From Macrostomum lignano (Eukaryota), in assembly GCA_002269645.1 (NCBI GenBank), contig NIVC01001863.1:164066-228065 (forward strand): a stretch of DNA of 64,000 nucleotides, in the 5' to 3' direction. Of this stretch, positions 45,018 to 45,717 are shown piece after piece. Under the pieces are notes generated by a model that made no database searches, was not told where the DNA came from, and worked only from the letters and a program-made list of their open reading frames with translations. The number at the start of each line of letters is the position of its first letter. Within the stretch, counting starts at the first letter, position 1. The translations under genes and the position numbers were made by a program.

Positions 45018-45717
45018 TCAGCGAGGAGGCATGAAGTCGCTGGGACCGCAGTGCGTCTCCAAGCTGCCCGCCAGGTACCAGCCGCAGTAGCCGGTGCAGC
45101 ACTCAGCTGACCGGCTGCACAGCTTCCAGCGTTCGATGCATTTGGCTGCTGTGGGAACTGCCGCAACTGCCGTGGGGAGGGAAACTGACTCAGTGAGTGA
45201 CTGGTGCAGTGTGGGTGACTCAGTGAGTGACTGGTGCAGTGTGGGTGACTCAGTGAGTGACTGGTGCAGTGTGGGTGACTAAGTGAGTAACTGGTGCAGT
45301 GTGGGTGACTCAGTGAGTGACTGGTGCAGTGTGGGTGACTCAGTGAGTAACTGGTGCAGTGTGGGTGACTCAGTGAGTGACTGGTGCAGCATGGGTGACT
45401 CAGTGAGTGACTGGTGCAGTGTGGGTGACTCAGTGAGTGACTGATGCAGTGTGGGTGACTCAGTGAGTGACTGGTGCAGCATGGGTGACTCAGTGAGTGA
45501 CTGGTGCAGTGTGGGTGACTCAGTGAGTGACTGGTGCAGTGTGGGTTACTCAGTGAGTAACTGGTGCAGTGTGGGTGACTCAGTGAGTGACTGGTGCAGC
45601 ATGGGTGACTCAGTGAGTGACTGGTGCAGCATGCGTGACACCACAGCTTGAACACTCACCAAGCAGCGCAGCGCATGCGAGAGCAATCAGGATCAGGTGC
45701 AGTCGGCATGCTAGCAT
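45018..45717 (-). CDS. Inhibitor-cystine-knot (knottin) toxin-like precursor 1 (68 aa): MLACRLHLILIALACAALLVAAVPTAA-KCIERWKLCSRSAECCTGYCGWYLAGSLETHCGPSDFMPPR; exons 45717-45660, 45166-45018
   Basis: G|GTGAGT donor and TTTCCCTCCCCACGGCAG| acceptor, phase 1. Signal peptide; C-X6-C-X5-CC-X3-C-X11-C framework. Not in the ORF track. Confidence 0.85.
45185..45635. repeat. 30-bp minisatellite filling the knottin-1 intron
   Basis: GACTCAGTGAGTGACTGGTGCAGTGTGGGT repeated about 15 times. Confidence 0.94.

Follow-up and report, generated by a model that had tools for sequence, protein, structure and literature searches.

We have identified, in the free-living macrostomorph flatworm Macrostomum lignano, a small gene whose putatively secreted product is a knottin-like orphan. 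The gene, called gene A here, lies within a 64,000-nucleotide stretch of contig NIVC01001863.1 of assembly GCA_002269645.1 (the window, numbered from its first letter), and about 11 kb away, on the opposite strand, lies a second gene with a knottin-type cysteine pattern, gene B (56996-57452, plus strand). Gene A is a genuine M. lignano gene, transcribed and lineage-restricted, and we hold with high confidence that both it and its knottin-like product are real. The fold class and a GenBank entry for the protein were already known; what is new is the recognition of genes A and B as encoding knottin-like peptides in a flatworm. Spiders, scorpions, cone snails, nemerteans, sponges and plants are among the groups known to have knottins, and no report of one in Platyhelminthes was found in the literature searched.

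Gene A is encoded on the minus strand in two exons, with a spliced coding sequence of 216 nt and a 71-residue precursor that reads, in full, MFQMLACRLHLILIALACAALLVAAVPTAAKCIERWKLCSRSAECCTGYCGWYLAGSLETHCGPSDFMPPR. Its parts are as follows.

45660..45726, minus strand: coding part of gene A exon 1, 67 nt, as in the GenBank model
45167..45659, minus strand: gene A intron, 493 nt
45018..45166, minus strand: coding part of gene A exon 2, with the TGA stop codon at 45020-45018
45048..45140, minus strand: gene A knottin core, first to last cysteine, from the pattern scan, CIERWKLCSRSAECCTGYCGWYLAGSLETHC
45186..45629, no strand assigned: 30-bp minisatellite in the gene A intron, 14.8 copies, nearly the whole intron

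The start codon is the ATG at 45726; a second in-frame ATG lies at 45717. Exon 1 supplies a hydrophobic signal peptide, MFQMLACRLHLILIALACAALL, and closes in phase 1 on the G of a split GTT valine codon. The intron opens with the donor GTGAGT (45659-45654) and closes with a pyrimidine tract and AG (45168-45167), and exon 2 contributes the last residues of the leader, (V)AAVPTAA, and then the 41-residue mature peptide KCIERW...MPPR, in full KCIERWKLCSRSAECCTGYCGWYLAGSLETHCGPSDFMPPR. A two-exon secretory precursor had been proposed from the letters alone, by a reader who began it at the ATG at 45717, and the sequence bears that original prediction out. An alternative in-frame acceptor AG (45150-45149) lies inside exon 2, and its use would remove six leader residues; with the intron retained, translation stops after 38 residues (ORF 45610..45726). 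Each minisatellite unit contains CAG and GTGAGT-like strings, which the spliceosome must ignore. A 225-residue ORF at 44978..45655 runs through the minisatellite in another frame as a repeat translation, (HCTSHSLSHP)n, and we rejected it as it clashes with the transcript-derived model.

Gene A had been described as unannotated, which is true of the ORF track only: its product is identical, at 100% over its full length, to the GenBank entry 'hypothetical protein BOX15_Mlig016487g2 [Macrostomum lignano]'. The exon junction proposed for checking, 45660/45166, is the same in our reading and in that model. The GenBank annotation of this assembly was built exclusively from genome-guided RNA-seq transcript assemblies, by way of StringTie/TACO, the TBONE boundary pipeline and TransDecoder (PMC5730564), so the gene A splice has indirect transcript support. 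Twelve nucleotides upstream of the ATG, on the minus strand, is a candidate splice acceptor (tttattacAG, AG at 45738-45739) that could be a cis-splice site or a spliced-leader trans-splice site; 38.8% of M. lignano genes are trans-spliced (PMC5730564). Read by the unit/gene scheme of that same paper, the '.g2' suffix suggests that gene A is one of several genes in its transcriptional unit. Directly upstream, on the same strand, a gene for a 142-residue protein occupies 46621-49685 (minus strand), with a hydrophobic first exon of multi-pass-membrane-like appearance, MVGTKQCWAIFLMTANILILFSGISFCIISY... This gene may be the '.g1' of the unit, in which case gene A would be downstream and trans-spliced.

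The same protein is encoded at a second place in the assembly, on contig NIVC01000292.1, among the same neighbours. There the intron measures 793 nt against 493 nt in the window, a difference of 300 bp that corresponds to about ten more minisatellite units. The two copies show no differences across 216 coding nucleotides, whereas outside the repeat their flanks and intron ends have 20 differing sites in 907 along with six indels. About 4.8 coding substitutions would be expected from the flank divergence (Poisson P ~0.009), and an identical coding sequence amid diverged flanks gives constraint modest support. The perfect identity of the coding copies could instead come from gene conversion or a recent duplication and not from selection.

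The leader of the precursor has a positive n-region (MFQMLACR), a hydrophobic core (LHLILIALACAALLVAAV) and a terminal PTAA with the cut placed before K, leaving small residues at -3 and -1; means over nine-residue Kyte-Doolittle windows reach 2.8. Judged from this profile and these residues, the product has the predicted signal peptide of a secreted precursor. The mature peptide carries a net charge of about +0.8 and a set of aromatic and hydrophobic residues, putatively at the surface (W6, L8, Y19, W22, Y23 and L24), and has no dibasic processing site or amidation signal.

The mature sequence and the framework given in the original prediction, C-X6-C-X5-CC-X3-C-X11-C, are exact in the spliced translation, and the inhibitor-cystine-knot (ICK) type that it claimed agrees with the six-cysteine C-C-CC-C-C pattern, whose loop lengths fall within the knottin range. 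The six translated frames of the window contain two such patterns, where shuffles would give 0.04. Against Pfam, all matches of gene A lie below the gathering scores: the best are Toxin_12 (PF07740; 16.6-16.8 bits) and Toxin_21 (PF08091; 16.0 bits), both with a gathering score of 21 bits, followed by the Dickkopf N-terminal cysteine-rich region (15.4-15.9 bits against 25, E 0.017) and Conotoxin (PF02950, the O-superfamily; 9.2-11.6 bits against 25.1). When the peptide was compared by phmmer with all PDB sequences, its six best matches were all ICK toxins: Hi1a (E 0.011), nemertide alpha-1 (0.066), three PcTx1 sequence variants (0.09-0.12) and Hc1b (0.13). No toxin match was significant in either the PDB-sequence or the Pfam search. 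Five shuffles of the peptide with cysteines held fixed gave best E-values of 0.17, 0.61 and 0.64, with two finding no match; the framework alone draws knottin toxins at roughly E 0.2-0.6, and the real sequence does about tenfold better. Local Smith-Waterman scores compared with those of cysteine-fixed shuffles gave P 0.0004 for PcTx1 and P 0.0024 for nemertide alpha-1, neither of which survives correction for the several hundred knottins that might have come out best.

A single-sequence AlphaFold2 model, made without an alignment, has a pLDDT of 77.5 and a beta-hairpin at E20-22/E32-34, and all 23 of the PDB matches that Foldseek returned for it at E up to 10 are knottins, with TM-scores of 0.28-0.64 (0.54-0.64 for the top three). 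None of the 23 is significant, the best E being 0.26. They include DkTx, ACTX-Hi:OB4219, PcTx1, J-atracotoxin, asteropsins, tachystatin, omega-agatoxin and omega-conotoxin. As a description based on sequence and a predicted model, 'knottin-like' is well supported.

Relatives of gene A were sought widely. An exhaustive phmmer search of the 71-residue precursor against 1.84 billion representative proteins recovered no credible homologue besides itself. Two other matches (E 4e-8 and 9e-6) were rejected: P0002 is a repetitive, bacterial-looking protein of 2312 residues whose matched repeat lacks the knottin cysteine pattern, and P0003 is a repetitive 190-residue ORF that matches the leader. A word-indexed search of 5.8 billion proteins with genes A and B returned, in each case, only the query itself, and tblastn of the mature gene A peptide across the window found no further copy.

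The original prediction had likened the peptide to the alpha-nemertides, toxins of the mucus of Lineus longissimus that act on voltage-gated sodium channels; activity on such channels of invertebrates and hydroxyprolines in the tail count among the hallmarks of that family. The nemertide alpha-1 sequence given there is correct (PDB 6ENA), and the shared features it listed, the first three loop lengths together with CI, S..CCT and CGW, hold up, with I3, S12, T17, G21 and W22 in register. Both peptides follow C-X6-C-X5-CC-X3-C (loops of 6, 5, 0 and 3 residues) and share ten in-register identities (C2, I3, C9, S12, C15, C16, T17, C20, G21 and W22). An alanine scan of nemertide alpha-1 found S12, T17, N19, W22 and F24 to be critical (PMC12836348); the corresponding residues of gene A are S, T, Y, W and L, three of the five being identical. 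In both, too, the C-terminal tail contains Pro-Pro and the last residue of the precursor is basic, and both come from soft-bodied marine spiralian worms.

The differences are nonetheless substantial. Loop 4 has 11 residues in gene A and five in the alpha-nemertides, the mature peptides have 41 and 31 residues, and gene A has no evident long pro-region, unlike the alpha-nemertides. Identity to nemertide alpha-1 is 10 of 31 positions (~32%), with cysteines making up five of the ten, whereas members of the family are at least 77% identical; they vary at just 7 of 31 positions, even the most divergent having 77-80% identity with the rest, and only lineid nemerteans are known to have them (PMC8406415). 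The match to 6ENA (16.6 bits, E 0.066 in a PDB-sized search) ranks below that to Hi1a and beside those to PcTx1. Because this match is marginal and no better than Hi1a or PcTx1, because loop 4 differs and because the Pfam toxin models stay below threshold, we do not regard gene A as an alpha-nemertide. The proposed likeness therefore stands for the scaffold and a few key residues and falls for a specific relationship: judged by its sequence, the peptide is alpha-nemertide-like without being a member of the family. A second PDB entry named 'Nemertide', 9RV3, matches alpha-1 at 14.8 bits, less well than gene A does, so a very distant relation to nemertides is compatible with the sequence, and such a relation may exist.

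The spider ASIC1a-inhibiting toxins of the PcTx1/Hi1a group (Pfam Toxin_12 type) provide the best sequence matches to gene A (E 0.011-0.13). CIERWKLC in gene A aligns with CIPKWKGC and CLVKWKQC of that group, and the two sides share an acidic residue before the CC pair, a glycine in loop 3, CW or CGW after the fifth cysteine and a long beta-hairpin loop 4. They differ in that loop 2 of gene A has five residues and not six, and loop 3 three and not four. The basic cluster KRRR in the hairpin of PcTx1, which forms its ASIC1a pharmacophore, is missing from gene A, where the matching stretch is YLAGSLETH. The likeness to spider toxins is likely to be convergent.

Conotoxins of the O-superfamily share the C-C-CC-C-C framework with genes A and B, and both groups are lophotrochozoan. 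Neither flatworm gene has the conserved O-superfamily signal peptide, however, and loop 4 is much longer in both. The closest link is between gene B and the delta-conotoxin Am2766, its best PDB match (E 0.013), with which it has C..G.SCD.F...CCVG.C.F and a very hydrophobic character in common; against the Pfam Conotoxin model, gene B gave no match. It is very doubtful that A and B are the first ion-channel-active knottin toxins of flatworms, descended from an ancestral spiralian gene that also gave rise to those of nemertides and the O-superfamily. Were such an origin to hold, M. lignano would be chemically defended, and the ICK toxins of Spiralia would be ancient and not convergent.

Gene B is annotated as BOX15_Mlig014969g3 (67 residues) and is present on four contigs. 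In the window its parts are as follows.

56996..57046, plus strand: gene B exon 1, signal peptide MVQLQLLLMFLILSD.., followed by the donor GTGAGT at 57047-57052
57301..57452, plus strand: gene B exon 2, (V)SEAAVTDKTMY, the knottin core and SRQD, with the TAA stop codon at 57450-57452
57336-57437, plus strand: gene B knottin core from the pattern scan, CAPLGTSCDDFYVRCCVGQCKFAFVFDNKPVYIC

Exon 1 of the window's copy is one G short, between 57041 and 57042, compared with three other aligned genomic copies; this copy is therefore frameshifted or mis-assembled, that is, either pseudogenised or affected by an assembly indel. The gene B framework is C-X6-C-X6-CC-X3-C-X13-C. Its AlphaFold model has a pLDDT of 77.1, with weak Foldseek matches that are mainly to ICK toxins, and the peptide, with a net charge of about -0.7, resembles that of gene A in being close to neutral and in having many aromatic and hydrophobic residues. 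The two genes share a common design: a signal-peptide exon, a GTGAGT donor, a phase-1 intron that splits a G|TT valine codon and a knottin exon. Beyond the cysteines, no similarity was found between them (BLASTP E 0.1; cysteine-fixed shuffle P 0.34), and the 'AAV' that precedes the first cysteine in both has a P of 0.6. As the sequence comparison is null, the case for paralogy consists of architecture, adjacency and framework. These suggest that genes A and B form a small local family in which B is very divergent.

The two genes lie in divergent orientation on either side of an ABC-transporter gene, and the pair also occurs on the duplicated contig. The transporter (50215-55445, minus strand) has two ATP-binding domains and is split or truncated in the window's copy, with a model of 345 residues against 1664 on the other contig. 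From the stop codon of gene B onwards, four to five telomere-type hexamers (TAACCC/TAATCC; 57451-57478, plus strand) form an interstitial run in the presumed 3' UTR. A single-exon ORF for a rhodopsin-type GPCR (58335-59447, minus strand) follows shortly after gene B.

What might the gene A peptide do? Our tentative reading is that it is a toxin or channel ligand, defensive or prey-directed, with an ion channel as the most likely target. The precursor would enter the ER, where the leader would be cut, probably after ..PTAA or the following lysine. The peptide would then fold into a three-disulfide inhibitor cystine knot, with bonds I-IV, II-V and III-VI and the last of them threading the ring, and be secreted, and its most likely action would be to bind an extracellular site on a membrane protein of another organism, such as an ion channel, thereby serving as a defensive or prey-directed secretion. 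With little net charge and many aromatic and hydrophobic residues, the products of both genes look more like gating-modifier toxins and delta-conotoxins than like cationic antimicrobials, and we therefore rank the channel-ligand reading above antimicrobial, reproductive, signalling and non-functional ones. M. lignano, a transgenic laboratory model, is not known to be toxic, which counts against a toxin role; in the laboratory it is fed diatoms. The literature searched gave no tissue, gland, secretion or activity data for gene A, and neither 'Mlig016487' nor 'Mlig014969' appeared in the main texts of that literature or in the supplements of the M. lignano papers covered. The search of 1.84 billion representatives gave no gene A homologue outside the M. 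lignano genome from which a function could be read by comparison.

Three other roles for gene A are considered less likely. First, it could be an antimicrobial or antifungal knottin released into mucus or gut, where it would control microbes in the manner of tachystatins, plant knottin antimicrobials and certain insect knottins. Orphan peptides that are small, secreted and rich in cysteine frequently turn out to be immune effectors, and Foldseek lists tachystatin A (rank 14) and sponge asteropsins for gene A and the cactus peptide Ep-AMP1 (rank 14) for gene B. We nevertheless consider this role unlikely: most membrane-active antimicrobial peptides are strongly cationic, at odds with the net charges of A and B, and the best sequence matches of both are neurotoxins and not antimicrobial peptides.

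Second, the peptide could act in seminal fluid or as a signal to conspecifics, as a product of the prostate or another reproductive gland that is passed to the partner and is fast-evolving and lineage-restricted, like many seminal-fluid transcripts of M. lignano. Its orphan status among 1.84 billion representatives would suit such a role, and so would the many novel small secreted prostate-specific transcripts of M. lignano and the rapid evolution of reproductive genes in the genus (PMC5977470, PMC7336406). The gene A identifier is absent, however, from the table of in-situ-validated reproduction-related transcripts in PMC7336406, a statement that applies to that table only, and we give a reproductive role a low probability.

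Third, gene A could encode an endogenous ligand of the worm's own receptors or channels, hormone-like or neuromodulatory in the manner of the vertebrate agouti-type knottins. Knottin folds do act as endogenous ligands in some animals, and both the weak match to the Dickkopf region (E 0.017) and the GPCR gene adjoining gene B fit this idea, although the latter may be a coincidence. Signalling peptides are usually conserved in related taxa, though, and for gene A no such conservation was found; nor does its precursor carry the dibasic or amidation sites of a processed hormone. An endogenous function thus appears to us doubtful.

Very unlikely is that gene A is a low-level or non-functional transcript, a short ORF with knottin-like cysteines by chance: the annotation pipeline did accept transcripts from RPKM 0.5 up, with ORFs called by TransDecoder (PMC5730564), gene A has no homologues and its neighbour is frameshifted in the window, but the knottin pattern is 50-fold rarer in shuffles, a proper signal peptide and canonical splice sites come before it, two copies with flanks ~2% diverged agree throughout their coding sequence, the likeness to toxins extends past the framework to residues other than cysteine and the AlphaFold fold is knottin-like with moderate confidence.

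Should the gene A peptide prove to be secreted and bioactive, as the channel-ligand reading would have it, one phylum would be added to the distribution of ICK peptides, a class to which many ion-channel tools, drug leads and bio-insecticides are owed. There would then also be a species amenable to genetics in which one could follow, in vivo, how an ICK peptide is made and released and what it does ecologically, since RNAi is established in M. lignano. Transgenesis is available as well (PMC5730564). If the role is instead endogenous or reproductive, gene A would be one more case of a toxin-like fold in non-toxic use.

The window holds several other features. A C-x-C-rich ORF of metallothionein-like appearance, CECETCICEKCECDTCECDHCECDNCECETCDC..., lies at 62565-62975 (plus strand) and has no Pfam match; at the equivalent place a 105-residue gene is annotated in L003 and L004. 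Mobile-element remains are found at 23099-25381 (plus strand), 32900-35392 (plus strand) and 29790-30620 (minus strand). Among them are a retroelement integrase C-terminal domain beside an ORF that joins DnaJ and chromo domains, an 830-residue ORF with a protein-primed type-B DNA polymerase domain (Maverick/Polinton-like) and a DDE-transposase fragment. An uninterrupted ORF of 638 residues from the TCF25 family (9947-11863, plus strand) sits in a block of 71% G+C, compared with a window average of ~50%. Long simple-repeat arrays with a 4-nt base occupy 14051-15815, 20603-21128, 28114-29040, 37290-38231 and 39672-41068 and produce long ORFs that are spurious, read in several frames and from both strands (CLSV.., DRQT.., YLSI..). 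An annotated 'gene' of 58 residues at 37290-38248, which overlaps one of these arrays, is probably an artefact.
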